Shown piece after piece: positions 30 to 11,632 of a stretch of 64,000 bases of DNA (positions are counted from its first letter, which is position 1; each line of letters begins with the position of its first letter). A model generated the notes under the pieces. The model ran no database searches. It was not told the DNA's origin and saw only the letters and a list, made by a program, of their open reading frames with translations. The stretch comes from Magallana gigas. Its lineage: Eukaryota. The position numbers were made by a program, and so were the translations under genes. Where the stretch lies: assembly GCF_963853765.1 (NCBI RefSeq), contig NC_088856.1, forward strand, positions 20,522,001 to 20,586,000, given 5' to 3'.

Positions 30-1674
30 TTGGAACGAAGAATCAAGAGAAAATATCTTAATGAAGAGGGCAATTTATTAGAAACAATAAGGAAATCTAA
101 TCCTAAAGTATTTTTTTCGAAATTTAGTAGGAGAAAAGTTAACAAAGTAAATGTTTCACTTGTAGATTTACACAATCATTTCATATCCCTTTCTTGTATT
201 GATCATACAGCCGTGGGAAATGACATGGTCGTAGGTGAAAAAGAAGTAATTTTTGAAGAATTAGAAAGTGACATATCTTTAAATGAAATTGAAGATGCTA
301 TAAAGACTTTAAAACCAGGTAAAAGTCATGGACTGGATGGTATAATTAATGAATATTTCATTGAATTCAAGGATATTTTGGTACCTTTTGTACACACAAT
401 TTTTAATGCTATGTTTACAACAGGTCATTTTCCACATATACTGTGTGAGTCTCTCATTGTACCAATATATAAAAAGGGTGGGACAACTGATCCTGCCAAT
501 TATAGAGGAATTAGTTTAATTAGTTGTATGACAAAACTTTTTACTTCAATTTTGAATAAGAGATTTATGTCATGGGCCGAGAAAAATGATGTTATTACAG
601 GCGCACAGTTCGGGTTTAGACCATTTCATAGTACTGTTGATGCCATTTTTGCATTACAAACAATTGTGAACAAATATCTCTCGAAAAAATGTAGATTGTA
701 TTGCGGCTTCGTAGATTTCAAGCGTGCCTTTGACACAGTGGATAGGGTTAAAATGTGGAATAAAATTTCAATGTATGGAATCAGAGGTAAACCTCTGAAG
801 ATTTTACGTTCACTTTATAATAATATTAAGTCTTGTGTTTTATTAGATGGTAAGTTATCAGATTTTTTTGTGAATAATCTTGGTGTTTTACAAGGGGAAA
901 TAATTTCCCCTCTCCTTTTTTCCCTTTATGTCAATGATTGCGAAATGGAATTTTTAAGCAATGGAAATACTCCAATTGAATTACAAGAGCTATCCTTATT
1001 TTTACTGATGTACGCAGACGACATGGTTATTTTTGCAATTACTTTGCAATTAACAAGTATTGGGCTAATGAACTTATGGGAAAACCAATTTTTTGAAAAG
1101 CCAGAAATTATTTTAACGATCGCCAAGCAACGTATTTTTGATAATTTTAAACAGTCTTTACTAGCTGACATAAATGCCTCTTCCAAATGTACAATCTATA
1201 GATATTTAGTTGATCATTGTACCTTGCAGTCATATCTAACAAAAAGAATTCCTTTACAATATAAGAAACTTATATGTAAATTAAGATTATCATCCCATTG
1301 TCTTACCATCGAAACTGGCAGATATAACAATGTTCCATTACAAAGACGTTTATGTCCTCTATGTACTTTAGATATAGAAGATGAATATCATTTTATATTG
1401 AAATGTCCCTATTACTGTAACTTAAGAGAAAAATTCCTTAAGAAGTTTTATTATATTAAACCCTCTGTCTTTAAATTAATTCTATTATTGTCAACACAAA
1501 ATGTAAAGGATTTGTGCAATTTAGGTAAATATATTAAGAATGCTTTTGTAATCAGAAAACTTCATGTATAAACTTGCCTTTTTCAAGTGACCAGTATATG
1601 TATTATAGCATGTGTATATTAATTGTATATGTCTATGAGCTGTACAGCTGTTGACTAATAAACAATACAATACC
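30..1674 (+). mobile_element. Non-LTR retrotransposon (RTE-X-like LINE) 3' part: RT ORF with internal in-frame deletion, C-terminal Cys/His motif and simple-repeat tail
   Basis: ORF 30..1571 has RT motifs (NYRGISL, QFGFR, FVDFKRAFDTV, GVLQG, YADD) and a C-terminal ETGRY..CPLC..EDEYHF..C motif. It ends in AATAAA plus (CAATA)n at ~1658-1674. The 5' end lies outside the window. Confidence 0.9.
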
Positions 1675-4387: not shown

Positions 4388-4702
4388 ATGAATTTTAACT
4401 GAGAAATTGCTATCAAAAACGTAAGATCTCCCTTATTTTAATATGCTTTCAAATGGAATACAAATAAAGAATTTCATTTTCTAACAAATATAACAGGAAA
4501 CTACCTGTGCACAGACCTCATTGGCACAGCCACGCCTAGGTAAAACTGGTTAGCAAACTTGTTTCACATACATGTTTCGTCCCACTTTGATTTGTTGATA
4601 TAAATCCGGGATTGAAAACTGAATTTGGTTTGAGTTCTATAGACGTTATTGATCAGTCGGAACTCCTCGGACTGGTTCCCGAAAGTAAACACGTGAATTG
4701 AA

Positions 4703-4799
4703 CAGGTTGGGACCAATCGCCCAAATGGGATAGAATATCCCAAACGGGTTATTATGACCCAAACGAGCTATATATAGATATCCCAAACAGGCTACATAA
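4703..4799 (+). repeat. Left terminal inverted repeat
   Basis: caggttgggaccaatcgcccaaatggga...gctacataa is the reverse complement of 11633..11729, with 3 mismatches near the inner end. Confidence 0.97.
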
Positions 4800-4881
4800 A
4801 ATTTGGCGGTATATTTTGCACGAGAATTTCCAAAATACGCTTCTTTGCGAGGGATCTGGATTGCTCATAGGGGCCCAAGTT

Positions 4882-4953
4882 TATAAAAGGCAGCTGAAAA
4901 TTCGGTCCTCATAGCCTTAACTGATGCGGAAGTGCGAGAACATAAGGTGAAAA
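4882..4953 (+). promoter_or_regulatory. Putative TATA box and non-coding first exon of the transposase gene
   Basis: TATAAAAG at 4882..4889 and a strong donor GTAAGT at 4954. The acceptor at 5677-5678 lies just before ATG 5681. Confidence 0.55.
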
Positions 4954-5680
4954 GTAAGTCTCTTTTATATTTACGATTACATTTTCCTTGTTAAAGCTAT
5001 TTAAACTTCAGTTAAGCCATAATTACTCTTACCTGCTGAAAAACACGACTTCATTCCGCCATTTTGAAAAGCTTGCATGATCATGTGATCACTAACTGTC
5101 CAATTGAAGAGTGTTTTATAAAATAGGTCATATTTTCAAATAGAATGTATGGTGCGCCATAATGAGAATTATTAAATAATTTTATTAAAACTCTTGTATA
5201 TATGTTTTTGAGGAAACGTATTGAAAAATTTACGGAAATGTTGTTTGAAAGTTGTATAAACGTTTAAAAATCTATGTCACGAATGAATAAAAAGTGATGA
5301 AGGTTAACATACATGCATCATTATATTACGTTACCTATGTAAATATGAAAAATAATGTTCTTAGTGTTAATTTGTCTAAACATATTGCCAAAGTCATTAA
5401 ATCCCTATGAGCATGTTTACTGCAATTTATCTGTGATTTTAAAAATGTAATTCATCAAGATGATATTATGTGCAAGTTTGGAGTTATTAAACGGTACCCA
5501 GTGAATTTGATACTGGTGCATTCTGGTCCGCAATATTTATTGCTGATATAAAGTAAATTATGTTTATAAGATTAACAAATAAGATTGAATACACAATTAG
5601 TTACACATGTTCATTTATGTGAAACAAATTTTTGAGGCTTATATTTACCTTTATCTTATCTAATGATTTTTTATGTAGAT

Positions 5681-7045
5681 ATGCCCCCTAAACGCAAATG
5701 CAGTTGCAAACAGCATGTATACTGTTCAACCCTATTCCCAGACGACGAGGAGATTGTTCAGAGAATATCCGACAAAAAAATTAAAGTTAAAGTCGTTAAC
5801 TTTTTGTTGAAAAGGGAATTTATATTCCCACATTCTACCTTTTTGTGTTCTCTGTGTGTAAAATTTGCTGAGCAGTGTCTTCAGCACGAAGATGAGACTG
5901 AGGAGGCGGCTAAAAAGAAGAAGTTCAGTATTTTGGAGTATTTTGAAGAGTTCCTGGGGGCAGTTTCCAATAATAGACTAACAAGCGATCAGCTGTCTTC
6001 CTTATCATACGCTTTAGGTAATATATCCTCTAACTAACACCTGTAATATTTTACAAGCAACGACGAAATGAAATTTTATTATTTCAAAGAAAAACCAATT
6101 AACTAACTCTGTGTATATATTTTAAGGAGGCAATTATGCATTGGTATTGAATAAATATTTCATACTTTAGGAAAAACACAAACCAAAGCAGTTTACGAGG
6201 ATACTGTGACTTCTGGGAGCCAGTATAAAGATGTAGATTACTTGGAAACGTTCAATCTGAAGGGTAAATAAATAAATTATAGATAATAAACGCACATGTT
6301 CACCCCCCCCCACACACACACACCAACCCCCCCCCCCCCACCCCCACCCCACCCCACACACACACACATACACACTGTTATATTATTTATTGAATATATT
6401 TATATATTATCTATGATATAAATATTTATTATTATAATTGTGTGTCGTTTCAGACTGGTTGCAAGAAAGAAACCATGTTATAGTTAATTTCATCAAAGGG
6501 ATCTGCAACGATGCTTGTGAGGAAATTAGACTAGCAAAGACTGTAGAGTCTATCTACGGGTGTAGAAACAATTCCTTTGTTTCACCAATGTCTTTCTCTC
6601 AAAATCTGCTTGGGTATGTTTAAAATACAGCCACACACACACACACAAGTATTCACGTAATGACTATAATTGCAGTCAAATTACGCCTATTTTATTCAAT
6701 CTACACATTAGTACTGTGTATGTGATGTTTGCATAATTAATTATTTATTCTAATAAATCATTATCTCTATTTATGTTATCTAGATACTACATAACTGGTA
6801 GCAAATCCGCTTTGAGGATAGGGTGTAAGGGCAGTCCATCGGGATCCTACACAACAGTTCAGAACTGGATTTCAGAGCAGAGCAAAGACGCCATAGAATG
6901 CCCCCAAAACGCTGATGTTGTAACATTTTTTGACAATAATCAGGTGATAATAAACATAAACTTTAGTTGCAATAAGCTTATATTCACATATAATTCTATA
7001 TGTACGGTAAACGTTAAGGATTTTGGGGCAAATAATTGGATTAAA

Positions 7046-7129
<84 letters not shown>

Positions 7130-10100
7130 ATACAAGTTATTTGAGTTTGCATATAGTCGTATACGTATATTTACATGTATTTTAAAACAGTATCATATAA
7201 TTTATAATTGAAAAAAAAATATTCCTGTCCAAATTAGGTAATTTTCATAATTTTTTGTGTTGCAACCATAGGTTTTAGAGAAGAAATGGAAGGTGGAGGT
7301 GAATTACAAAGGGAAGGCCAGTGTCGTTACCACCATGGTACATATTATCCCGGACATTGAGAGCAATATTCAACATATTCTGGAACTATCTCCACGACAG
7401 TGGATGAATCACACTAGTGATGGCAAACGAGATACAATTAGTAAAATGAAAGATCTTGATATGATACACTTCGAAACGTTTCGGCACTATAGGTACATTG
7501 TGTTCTATATAAGTAAAATTATAACTCACATTGCATTTATTATCAAATTAAAATTAAATGATAAATTATATGCTGAATAAATATTTTTATAATTTTTTGT
7601 CTGTTTAGAAATGAATTCATTAGAGACAAATTAGAGAAAATTGTTAGCCATCAGGATGACAACGGACTGGACAACATTGATAAGAATTTGCTAAATATAA
7701 CTTATATTACAGCAGAGGAAAGGTACATATTATTTTATTATTAAATAAACGGATTTTTTATACAAAATTAAAATTCGATAAAATTGCATTTTTGTTAATT
7801 TGCAATGATTTGATCATTAAATTTTTTAGGTATTCTTTCATTAAATCTAACGATGGACCAAATCCAACTGTCATCATGGGAGAACCATGTTTCGAAAACC
7901 CCTGTTCTTACGAGGCAGTTGAGAAGGTTTGTAAGTCATGAATCGTTAATTCATCAATCTATTTGTCAACCACTACATGCAGTTGTTAATATTTATTTTA
8001 AATTTATACGCTCTTAGGTTCTTGATCACATTCGAGAGAAGGCGAAGGTGGGTGAGGCGAGGAAATGGACGATGGTTGGGTGTGATGGCCTGCCCTATAC
8101 TCTTGCATCAAGAATCATCGGTTTGTCGCAAATTAAAATACATTAATTTATTAAAAGTGTAAACATAAAAATCACACGAAATCAAAATTGACATCGTAAT
8201 ATATTTTTGTAGAGAACATGTTTACCTGTCCGGATTGTGGCATGGAGTTCATGGATGAACCAGATTTCAAGGAGCACATAAAGAATTACGACCATGCACT
8301 AAACGTCGACATAGAGAAGTGTAGAAAGTACAACGACATTGTCATGTTACCTGGTACATAGTTCTTTGAATTATTTTATAAAACAAGGAAATTTTGTATT
8401 TTTTCTAGTAATCAATAAGAAATAAATACAGCGTTATGCCATATAAAAATGCACAATATTAATTTCAGGACTTGGTCATTATGAGATCAATATGACGAAA
8501 GCCATATTTCGCCTGCTATGGGATGTGATCCTTATAGATCTTGCAAAACTTTTAGGCTTCAATAGCCCAAAAGCACAAGCCTCATTTATGAGCGCAACAG
8601 GTAAAAATAAAATAGTTTTATTTTATAAAAACGAATATTAAAAAAGTTTTGTCCCAACTTTTATCTTATGACATTTATTTTGCAGACCACCACAAAAGCT
8701 GGCAAATTTTTCAGATATTTCTGCAGTCAATGGCTGCAGAGCTTTTGTTGGTATATGTGAGGGATCCGAGTACATCCTCGCCTTCTGTCAGTGGCTTCTA
8801 TGAATGGTATGTTGGGGTTAAAAACCCCAATTATAAGTTTATGGCTGAGGTAGTATTTTCATACTGCCTTGCCCTCCATGTATTTAGAGCAGGGGTCAGG
8901 CGCAACAATTCCACAGCAATTAATGCGTCTAAAACAAAGTTTTCACCATTATTCTTTGGCCTTAACATGCCATTTTACATGGAGACATATATGAGGGACT
9001 CATTTGTTCGAATTCAGTGCCCAAGTAAAGTACGTGGGTTTATTGAGGAACATGAGTCCTACAGAGTTTCTGGCAGTGATGCCAAGGGTGAGGGGGGTGA
9101 TTTTATATTAGAAGCCAAAAACAGGAAAACGAAGATGTGGATCCAAAATGGAGTGCCTGATGAGGAGAAGTGGAGAAATGTTTGTAGGTGCATTGACAAA
9201 CTAGAAAAGGTAACTTCAGCCATTTTGAAATAAAAAAAACCAATAACTCATTTACTTTTTTTATTCTTATCTTTAGCATTATCTTTAGCAATCATGATAT
9301 GGTGAGGGCATTTCCATCCAATTCTGCTCAGAGGTGCTTTGGTTGTGGCTGTAATGCCAACGCACAAAGCATGCACCCAGTACTCGCATGTCTGCTTCAC
9401 CCGCCCACGCTGCGAGACATGTGAACACCCAATCCAGAGAGCCTTGGTATCTTTCCTCCCTTCTCCACAGAATCTACACAGTGTAGAATCTTGAACTGTG
9501 GAGAAGGAGGACTCCGATGTCTGCGTCTCTGTATGGCGCGTCCTGCTCCTTATGGGTGACAACGACAGGGATGTCCTGGGGTCCATTGAGCTTGTAGATG
9601 GGACGTCTTCTTTTTGTTGGGGTCCATCTTGAACATTGATCTTTCCCTGAAATTTATAACATAGGGAATAAAAGTACTCTTTTAATATTAATTGAGTTCT
9701 TTTTTATGACGTTCATACATAAAATATTTATATATGAAATAAAGTATTCATTAATTTATTACCAAGTCAAAATTCACCCCTGCAGACTTGTACACATATT
9801 CTGTCCCTCCAGGGCTCTTTAAGTATAAGACGCAGTCTGCGCCTGTGGTTTCGTGTATCTCTTTTGCCTAAAGTAGATACATGCATGTATATTTTTCATA
9901 CAAATGCATATATATCTTAACATCATTATACATTTCCAATCATAATAATGCGTGTGTTGAACCAAAATTATTGAGAATTGTGTTTTTGAAAAGGGGGGGG
10001 GGGTGCCGCCATTTTTTCTTGGGGTGGGGGTGGCAAAGCCGATTTCCGTTACCTTTTACTATGTCATTTCTTTAACTTTTTTCTGCGATGTTTAATTTAA

Positions 10101-10661
10101 TGAAATAATTTTACAATCGTTTTATTTTTTATTTTTAAACAATTTATTTACAAAACTTTTCATATTTTTGTATAGGTCAGAGGAAACTTGAGTGCTGCTC
10201 TATGCATTTGTGAGCTTGATGCCGAATACGCTTACATGTACAATATTGATTTTGAAATCAATTGTTTTAGACAGTCTATCAGAGAATCAGGCTACATAAA
10301 TGAGCCGTTCAAAGAAAAGAGTCACACGTCTTTTAGTGGGAAATCCTTGGACCGTTCATTGACGGAGTTTCACGTAAACTCATTGCGACACCGCGAAGAC
10401 TTTATGAATTTTATTATCAACCACAGCCTCAGTGACAGAAAAAAATTTCCTCCGATTTTTGTTCTCACAGACGAAAGGACAAAAGCAGAATCCATTGTTA
10501 ATAAAACAAAACCCGAAATTATTAAGATAATTGAAGGTGAACTTGAGGATATAAACAATGAGAAAATCAATGCCGAGTGGAGGAAAGTTAAATCGAAGAC
10601 AAAAGCAGATATTCTTAAATTTTATCATGATGTTTTAAAATCGGAGGGCCGAAATGATTAA
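5681..10661 (+). CDS. Putative DDE-type transposase, 12 coding exons, 855 aa, distantly Academ/Transib-like
   Basis: Phase-consistent GT-AG exons: 5681-6017, 6171-6263, 6454-6613, 6784-6943, 7272-7492, 7609-7722, 7830-7926, 8018-8120, 8213-8353, 8469-8600, 8686-9209, 10176-10661 (2,568 nt, no internal stop). Motifs: FFDNNQ, VGCDGLPY, a C2H2-like CPDC..H..H insertion, PGLGHYE, GGDFILEAKN; N-terminal CxCxxH..CxxC. Confidence 0.88.
7051..7123. repeat. (CT)n microsatellite in a transposase intron
   Basis: Direct reading. Confidence 0.95.
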
Positions 10662-11587
10662 ATTTTTATATGTATATATTGCAATTTTTATGCTGACAAT
10701 TACTTGGAATGTTATTTTCCTTATCACATAATTGTAAATACACCTGTAAAACTTGCAATTAGAATATGTAAATGTTTCACAAATGTAGTATTTTTATCTG
10801 TATATATTGTATGATATTTTAAAAAAACAGTGTGATATGTAAATAATACTAAATATAAACTTTATTTATTTGTAAATATTGTATATATATATAATGAAAC
10901 ATCACATTATGTTACATCATAATATCATCATATTATATAATCAAAATTGTATATTTGTAAATATAAACTTTATTTATTTAATTTAATTGAAAACAATTAA
11001 TAAAACATATTCTTACTTTCTCTAGAAGAGTGTTTTTTCTCTTAAAAAATGATTGGCTAACGCTCCTTGATCCAACTTGGGATGGAACCTGTCTCCTGTT
11101 CTTCCCAAGAGTTAGATTAGAAACTTTTCCGCTTCTGCCATTTTTTCTCTGTTAAAAAATTTCAATGCAAATTTAATATATTAACGTCATATTTTATAAT
11201 ATAGAACGAAATCTAATGTTATTGGCGCATTTCATTTTCCTTATAAATTAATATTTTATTTTAGTCCTTCTGGTGCTCCATACAATAAGCTCTAAATTTC
11301 AACCACACCAAAGATCATAGCCATTTTCTGATTGGATAATTTGATCTCGCGAGAAGTTATTGTTTCAATATGTCTTCCATGTGTTAGTGTCGAAGAAAAT
11401 TACTTCAACTTTTGTTGATATTAGAACATAAAGGTAAGTTTAAAGAAAAACAGTTAAGGTCACCGTGCAAAAGGACTGACTCATGTTTTAGTAAATAAGT
11501 TTATGAAGTGAATAGGGATGAAAAATACGTAGAATTTAACTCAATCTACAGATAATGACTCAATTTCCTTACCAATGTACTCGACAT
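9248..11587 (-). CDS. Transposon-encoded MADS-box-like + PHD-finger protein, 4 exons, 211 aa
   Basis: Phase-0 GT-AG exons 11587-11573 (MSSTL), 11148-11017, 9867-9778 and 9646-9248. The spliced peptide SFFKRKNTLLEK|AKEIHETTGADCVLYLKSPGGTEYVY matches the MADS/SRF pattern. The C-terminus CRFC..WIGCSH..C..WVHALC..WKCPHH is a PHD finger. Confidence 0.82.
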
Positions 11588-11632
11588 CTTGCGGAAACAA
11601 GTCTTCTTTTTCTTGCAGAAAAAAAAACCGCG

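Follow-up and report, generated by a model that had tools for sequence, protein, structure and literature searches.

A recently active Chapaev-related transposon of the oyster Magallana gigas carries a split gene for a predicted MADS-PHD protein tail to tail with its transposase gene

The element described here lies in a 64,000-nucleotide stretch of the genome of the oyster Magallana gigas (NCBI RefSeq assembly GCF_963853765.1, contig NC_088856.1, positions 20,522,001 to 20,586,000 of the forward strand), which we call the window and whose coordinates we use below. Window positions 4703-11729 are an autonomous, recently active cut-and-paste DNA transposon of 7,027 base pairs (bp) that belongs to a Chapaev-related lineage and has two genes arranged tail to tail: a plus-strand gene that encodes a DDE-type transposase and a minus-strand gene whose predicted product of 211 amino acids (aa) joins a MADS domain to a PHD finger. 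We hold the identity of the element and of its MADS-PHD partner with high confidence. The element and its flanks are laid out as follows.

4698-4702, no strand: left target-site duplication TTGAA; the identical 5 bases follow the right end
4703-4784, plus strand: left terminal inverted repeat, 82 bp and perfect, starting CAGGTTGGGACC; compared with the reverse-complemented right end, it first mismatches at position 83
4720-4729: box CCCAAATGGG of the CC-N6-GG type in the left terminal inverted repeat, followed in that repeat by the boxes CCCAAACGGG and then CCCAAACGAG, also of the CC-N6-GG type
4768-4777: CTATATATAG in the left terminal inverted repeat
5651-9233, plus strand: transposase gene of about 10 exons, given as homology blocks from tblastn of full-length relatives: 5651-6037, 6161-6262, 6447-6617, 6755-6952 (with FDNNQ), 7272-7493, 7828-7929, 8018-8119 (CDGLPY), 8218-8361 (CxxC...HxxxxH), 8456-8611 (GHYEIN) and 8661-9233
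9646-9248, minus strand: exon 4 of the MADS-PHD gene, with the linker, the PHD finger and the stop codon
9867-9778, minus strand: exon 3, the second half of the MADS domain, starting AKEIHETTGADCVLYLKSPGGTEYVY
11148-11017, minus strand: exon 2, a basic N-terminal region and the first half of the MADS domain, ending SFFKRKNTLLEK
11587-11573, minus strand: exon 1, ATG plus four codons (MSSTL), 142 bp inside the right terminus
11648-11729, minus strand: right terminal inverted repeat, the likely promoter of the MADS-PHD gene, with CTATATATAG at 11655-11664 and CCCAAATGGG at 11703-11712
11730-11734, no strand: right target-site duplication TTGAA

A preliminary description, made from the letters of the window, had placed the minus-strand gene within a transposon, and this residence is borne out by terminal repeats, target duplications, copies and small derivatives. 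BLAST against the same 564-Mb genome found four copies of 98-100% identity (the window and contigs C1, C6 and C9), among which the boundaries of homology coincide to the base, near window positions 4700 and 11735. All four start CAGGTTGGGACC and end GGTCCCAACCTG, and each is bounded by a 5-bp direct duplication, which is TTGAA in the window and on C1 and TTCAA on C6 and C9. The first 39 bases of the repeat, with up to three mismatches allowed, occur at 68 genome sites versus 0 for a reversed control, and several of these sites form inverted pairs about 370-430 bp apart that represent small non-autonomous derivatives. Because the copies are near-identical, the repeats perfect, and both duplications and small derivatives present, we conclude that this is a young, mobile cut-and-paste family. 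Terminal repeats were compared in three families, of which the window element is family A. Family B has the same terminus as family A, CAGGTTGGGA, with 5-bp duplications GTAAA and TTCTA, and family C has the same CAGG terminus as A and B at the one end that was read. Inverted pairs of family A that keep the CCCAAATGGG box lie at C2:10223203-10223611, C2:47116460-47116866, C6:12835356-12835769, C6:51277439-51277871 and C7:39040563-39040937.

The four exons proposed in the preliminary description were found at their claimed positions on the minus strand: all three introns are in phase 0, every one has a GT donor and an AG acceptor, and the predicted product is 211 aa long. The stop codons of this gene and of the transposase gene are 14 bp apart, so that the two stand tail to tail. 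Coding sequence and splice sites do not differ among the window, C1 and C6 copies, and the C9 copy has four substitutions in the coding sequence, all of them non-synonymous. Several small details of the gene recur in diverged families. The five-codon first exon reads MSSTL, MSASV and MSTHV in families A, B and C, respectively, and begins about 140-150 bp from the terminus; exon 2 ends with a lysine codon followed by GT in every family with a readable junction; exon 3 starts after AG with alanine, or with valine in families D and E (AKE, AHE, ARD, VQD); and the exon 3 donor after codon 30 is kept in a related copy, L005. The exon plan as a whole is kept in the diverged oyster families, in a clam and in amphioxus. 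A search among annotated oyster proteins of 73-231 aa found none that matches the PHD exon. Two further observations concern intron 2. It holds a 157-aa open reading frame (ORF; 10188-10661, plus strand, the strand of the transposase) that is kept in 4/4 copies and has no family match (the best was Ku_N, E 0.064), and in the C1 copy the same intron is longer by an insertion of about 1.7 kb near window 10795; the ORF or the insertion may be the remnant of a nested element.

What is the evidence that exons 2 and 3 encode a MADS domain? Joined exon peptides of 49-60 aa were used as Pfam queries, and the 60-aa stretch formed by joining exons 2 and 3 of the window element matches SRF-TF (PF00319) with an E value of 9.3e-7 and 28.6 bits (cut-off 26) over profile positions 9-48 of 48. 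Neither exon 2 alone nor exon 3 alone has a Pfam match, and the fact that the MADS match appears only when the two are joined is itself evidence for that joint. A genome search with the PHD exon returned about 15 diverged loci at 35-73% identity, and many of these have pieces resembling exons 2 and 3 upstream, with order and strand preserved. The gene was rebuilt in family B (contig C4, and C9 near 18 Mb) and family C (C1 and C5), as well as in families D and E, which have decayed; the joined exons score 28.6, 32.3, 27.2 and 32.2 bits against SRF-TF in families A, B, C and E, respectively, and the two amphioxus partners described below, P0166 and P0167, score 30.4 and 30.9 bits. The matches start at profile positions 7-10 in the oyster sequences and at 1-2 in those of amphioxus. 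We also searched the PDB sequences with a profile (A1) made from an alignment of the transposon partners only, with 16 rows. It retrieved SRF (2.4e-11), MCM1 (2.8e-9), MEF2A-D (about 1e-6) and SEPALLATA3 (5.5e-6), with the next match at E 0.6, and its best match was SRF at 46.6 bits versus about 32 for MEF2. Because profile A1 finds only MADS proteins, we assign the partner family to the MADS proteins, nearest to the SRF/MCM1 branch, as the preliminary description had supposed from a motif pattern.

Might the four-exon model be a chance construction, in which only the ORF of the PHD finger is real and the splice sites were picked to fit a pattern? It can be said for this explanation that the junctions were read from the DNA itself and that all the Logan ORF calls matching exon 4 are unspliced, although such calls are uninformative on splicing. 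Against it, a MADS domain split at this very junction is found again in families of only 34-39% protein identity and in annotated amphioxus gene models. Moreover, an independent SRF-TF scan of the genome, which found the host MEF2-like and SRF genes, also found a weak match (L036) that is an exon-3-like piece adjoining a transposase homologue. We consider a chance construction extremely improbable. Two MEF2-type MADS exons in the same genome are 58 kb apart (C6:26936562-26936681 and C6:26994975-26995097), and an in-frame TAG in one of them suggests that the host MEF2 gene has a tandem duplicate or pseudogene here.

The minus-strand gene keeps company with the same transposase wherever it could be followed. 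At all the diverged PHD loci examined, the last exon of the transposase (41-75% identity) is convergent and directly downstream. In the clam Tegillarca granosa, a transposase is followed by a convergent exon 2 (ending NKAFSKRKDTLLLK), exon 3 (starting AKEIHELTGAEVNLII) and PHD exon. In amphioxus, a small gene convergent to a transposase with the Chapa domain begins AMQLHVLTGCDV; its homologues in Branchiostoma belcheri, P0166 and P0167, are annotated proteins of 187 and 193 aa whose genes, in two assemblies of that species, are each convergent to a gene with RAG1_imp_bd (1,078 or 977 aa) and have an intron between LLKA and ALEF, at the equivalent position of the MADS domain. The claim of a two-component organisation is upheld by this co-occurrence of the gene with homologues of one transposase across families and phyla (oyster families, clam and amphioxus). 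The amphioxus loci gave no clear terminal inverted repeats, and the neighbour of a transposase relative in Owenia fusiformis has no MADS or PHD similarity. On contig L077 the neighbouring gene has SRF-TF as its only Pfam match, below threshold (15.6 bits), and is without a PHD finger. Another neighbour, on metagenome contig L074, looked MADS-like by eye and was set aside as a lead only: it has no SRF-TF match, scores 9.5 bits against a local profile, and in a homologue search found only itself. A one-base frame break separates this ORF from a PHD frame (L074 7366-7380, minus strand), and it may be an assembly error or real, because the contig comes from a 7x long-read assembly. Both B. belcheri loci have an annotated gene of 204 aa immediately upstream of the one for the MADS partner (L078 5796-7132 and L079 8178-9448, both minus strand), perhaps a third gene of the element in amphioxus.

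Further evidence on the origin of the partner comes from the host SRF gene of the oyster (C6:18006351-18006608), which has an intron between IMKK and AYEL, the same codon boundary as that between LLEK and AKEI in the transposon gene. In the MEF2-like genes the split is at another position, because their matches start at profile position 8-9. The intron position common to the host SRF gene and the transposon gene speaks for descent of the latter from a cellular gene of the SRF type, copied as genomic DNA, and it also favours the explanation that the gene is a mere passenger, a captured piece of a host SRF-like gene without function for the element. A passenger would be expected to decay or to differ between families, but this gene has kept its first exon and all its intron positions, and in the clam, amphioxus and at least five families of the oyster it has stayed beside the same transposase. 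Synonymous sites are saturated among families A, B and C and the clam, with 34-39% of residues identical, and because of this saturation only closer pairs can be used for the ratio of non-synonymous to synonymous substitution rates (dN/dS). These pairs, which may include dead copies, the family-A copies being too alike for selection tests, gave 0.11-0.19 (family A against L005) and 0.23 (family B against L014). Values in this range of 0.1-0.25, together with the saturation of synonymous change between families, speak against a passenger. Related active elements that commonly lack the gene, or a dN/dS near 1, would have spoken for it, and neither was seen. We therefore regard a passenger as very unlikely. 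The neutral evolution that the preliminary description had named as the contrary outcome is not what the closer pairs show (0.11-0.23), and these substitution patterns indicate that the MADS-PHD gene is under purifying selection rather than in neutral drift.

Relative to SRF and MCM1, then, the partner has in common an SRF-like TG motif after the helix and the intron boundary of the host SRF gene, and it differs in being encoded by a transposon, in its length of 211 aa, in having no SAM-type extension and in its diverged N-terminal segment. It differs from them also in what follows the MADS domain: the mollusc partner is fused to a PHD finger, and the amphioxus partners have an RGG-rich tail instead. 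Because the amphioxus partners keep the MADS domain without a PHD finger, we take the MADS domain to be the conserved core of the partner. The PHD finger proposed for exon 4 was recovered above the cut-off of PF00628 (E 9.7e-6, 26 bits, cut-off 24). Its eight zinc ligands, of the C4-H-C3 type, follow the order C-x2-C ... C ... C-x4-H-x2-C ... C-x-H, the last being histidine, and families A, B and C and the clam all retain two tryptophans at cage positions, in LWIGC and EYWVH. Its nearest solved relatives are Pps, DIDO1 and TAF3, and the PHD fingers of DIDO1 and TAF3 read histone H3 trimethylated at lysine 4 (H3K4me3).

To which group of transposons does the element belong? In a protein library clustered at 50% identity, the last exon of the transposase has 753 relatives at E<=1e-3, and it is 35-40% identical (E about 1e-30) to proteins of 1,000-1,100 aa from amphioxus and metagenome contigs that have RAG1_imp_bd and DUF6589. 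Relatives come from Branchiostoma, Owenia, the clam T. granosa and other assemblies; the full-length ones (950-1,250 aa) carry DUF6589, and 3 of the 10 scanned (P0054, P0085 and P0100) have RAG1_imp_bd, the Chapa domain. That domain is not detectable in the first coding exon of the oyster element itself, and a protein-atlas search with the last exon returned nothing useful. Chapaev was first described in the lancelet, and the Chapa domain defines the Chapaev transposases (PMC4411706; bioRxiv 10.64898/2026.01.24.700457). Chapaev elements have 3-4-bp target duplications and CAC...GTG termini, and Chapaev3 elements are under 2 kb with a single ORF (PMC4079192, PMC3014272). The likeness to Chapaev (CMC group) is that the transposase relatives carry the Chapa domain, which is shared with the N-terminus of RAG1; the element differs in its 5-bp duplication, its CAGG...CCTG termini, its length of 7 kb and its two genes. 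Because these two hallmarks, duplication and termini, differ from those of Chapaev and no Chapa domain was detected in the N-terminal exon, we speak of a Chapaev-related lineage and not of a member of Chapaev.

Two other groups were considered and rejected. PIF/Harbinger elements are likewise two-gene cut-and-paste transposons, with a small second protein presumed to bind subterminal repeats, and by analogy we infer a comparable function for the MADS-PHD protein beside the Myb-like partner of Harbinger, a comparison the preliminary description had also drawn. The element is nevertheless not a Harbinger: its transposase is unrelated and shows no Pfam match of the DDE_Tnp_4 type, its duplication is 5 bp and not TWA, and its partner is a MADS-PHD and not a Myb/SANT protein. 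The RAG1-RAG2 pair, ProtoRAG and TransibSU resemble the element in having convergent genes and a 5-bp duplication, and the mollusc partner, like RAG2, has a PHD finger at its C-terminus. They differ from it in that a MADS domain stands in place of the kelch propeller of RAG2 and in that the termini of the element are not CAC heptamers. Membership was again rejected: the transposase relatives match only the family of the RAG1 N-terminal domain, with no Pfam match to the RAG1 core, and the partner is without kelch repeats. The likeness to RAG1-RAG2 is one of design, with no demonstrated ancestry. A distant relative of the transposase was seen at C7:42146360-42149902 (L063, ORF 28-2583), an intronless frame of 851 aa that is 27% identical to the last exon and has weak DUF6589 similarity. 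No MADS partner was seen within 1.5 kb of it, and it is possibly domesticated or retro-copied.

How might a MADS-PHD protein serve a transposon? In the mechanism that we propose, the partner would dimerise through its MADS domain and bind the CArG-like boxes (CC-N6-GG, 10 bp) that lie subterminally in both inverted repeats; at the ends it would help to assemble or recruit the transposase, in the way of the Myb-like protein of Harbinger; and its PHD finger would couple it to histone H3 tails, most likely to H3K4me3. Such reading of H3 tails would bias activity or integration toward open chromatin, as the PHD finger of RAG2 does for RAG1. We give this particular mechanism slightly less than an even chance. 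The boxes on which it depends stand at fixed positions, CCCAAATGGG at base 18 of the repeat in family A and CCCAAAATGG at base 18 in family C, and family B has a perfect CArG box, CCTTTTATGG, at base 55; the background rate of CC-N6-GG is about 0.1 per 160 bp. For the amphioxus MADS region (P0166 residues 10-110), AlphaFold2 gave a model with a mean pLDDT (predicted local distance difference test) of 73.8, the core lying at 83-95 except for one 10-residue block at 70, and with a helix at 14-45, strands at 50-55 and 59-64 and a helix at 66-73. The top 46 Foldseek matches of this model in the PDB are all MADS proteins (probability 0.54-1.0, E from 7e-3). A homodimer of the same region was predicted at 0.84 versus 0.00 for the best control, with contact agreement between runs of at least 96% and partner pLDDT of at least 81, and so passed a mark that was reached by 21 of 30 solved homodimers and by 0 of 23 solved single chains.

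The same boxes invite another explanation, namely that the MADS-PHD protein regulates the transcription of the element and not its transposition, binding the CArG-like or MEF2-like, TATA-containing boxes of the promoters and switching both genes on or off, while its PHD finger recruits or senses a chromatin state and might thereby, for instance, establish silencing or work against it. MADS proteins act as transcription factors, and with gene starts about 140-150 bp inside the terminal repeats, the boxes stand in promoter position for both genes; CTATATATAG of family A, moreover, fits the MEF2 consensus site and contains a TATA box. However, the boxes are kept in small derivatives that have no gene to regulate, and the known accessory proteins of two-gene transposons (the Myb-like protein of Harbinger and RAG2) act in transposition. 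Regulation of transcription is also compatible with a role in transposition, so that both could hold. As an explanation in place of a role at the ends, we judge it fairly unlikely, if far from negligible.

Taken as a whole, the explanation that combines the element, its two genes, the domains of the partner and the proposed action of a MADS dimer at the ends with histone reading by the PHD finger is in our judgement the best one, and moderately probable. Several points weigh against it. The junctions are predicted from sequence, and the RNA runs that contain the stretch contain its introns as well. The N-terminal DNA-contact segment of the oyster MADS domain has diverged, as follows from matches that start only at profile positions 7-10. 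The boxes of family A are imperfect CArG boxes, and both CTATATATAG and CCTTTTATGG may be no more than the TATA boxes of promoters located within the repeats. The PHD finger is not essential to the system as a whole, because the partners of amphioxus and of contig L077 are without it. Finally, fold and dimer were predicted, with alignment A1, for the amphioxus partner instead of the oyster protein, and the pass of the predicted dimer may stem from the memory that such models have of solved MADS dimers.

Two features of the window stand apart from these questions. A (TC)37 microsatellite occupies 7050-7124 within an intron of the transposase gene, and its length varies among the copies, since the BLAST pieces break there. 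Outside the element, at window 30-1571 on the plus strand, a 513-aa ORF resembles by eye the reverse transcriptase of a retrotransposon without long terminal repeats (FRPFHST, YADD).

We conclude that the observation in the preliminary description is confirmed and that its interpretation is supported. Its claim to be without precedent also held in a search of the literature, which found no MADS protein encoded by a transposon (Repbase Reports lay outside that search). The accessory proteins known from cut-and-paste transposons are Myb-like in Harbinger, TnpA in CACTA and RAG2-like in ProtoRAG, and MADS-PHD is a new kind. That no annotated oyster protein of 73-231 aa matched the PHD exon illustrates that gene predictions miss short, intron-rich transposon genes of this sort. 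A dimeric DNA binder joined to a histone reader makes it testable how a transposon finds its own ends and chooses its chromatin, and the intact, near-identical copies in the oyster allow direct expression of the proteins. A wider scenario, which we think somewhat doubtful, is that Chapaev-related transposons of bilaterians carry an ancient and obligatory SRF-type MADS partner to which molluscs added a PHD finger. The result would be a two-protein machine like RAG1/RAG2, with a MADS dimer bringing the two ends together at CArG-like boxes and a PHD finger that permits cutting or integration where chromatin is methylated at H3K4. The Chapaev group has been discussed as the source of the N-terminal domain of RAG1; if the scenario were true, a chromatin-gated transposase partner would have arisen independently of RAG2 within a group that shares that very domain. 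To our knowledge, textbooks allow animals two MADS-box lineages only, SRF and MEF2. The sequences compared here indicate that animals have a third MADS-box lineage, a mobile one, which has been kept together with its transposase from amphioxus to bivalves.

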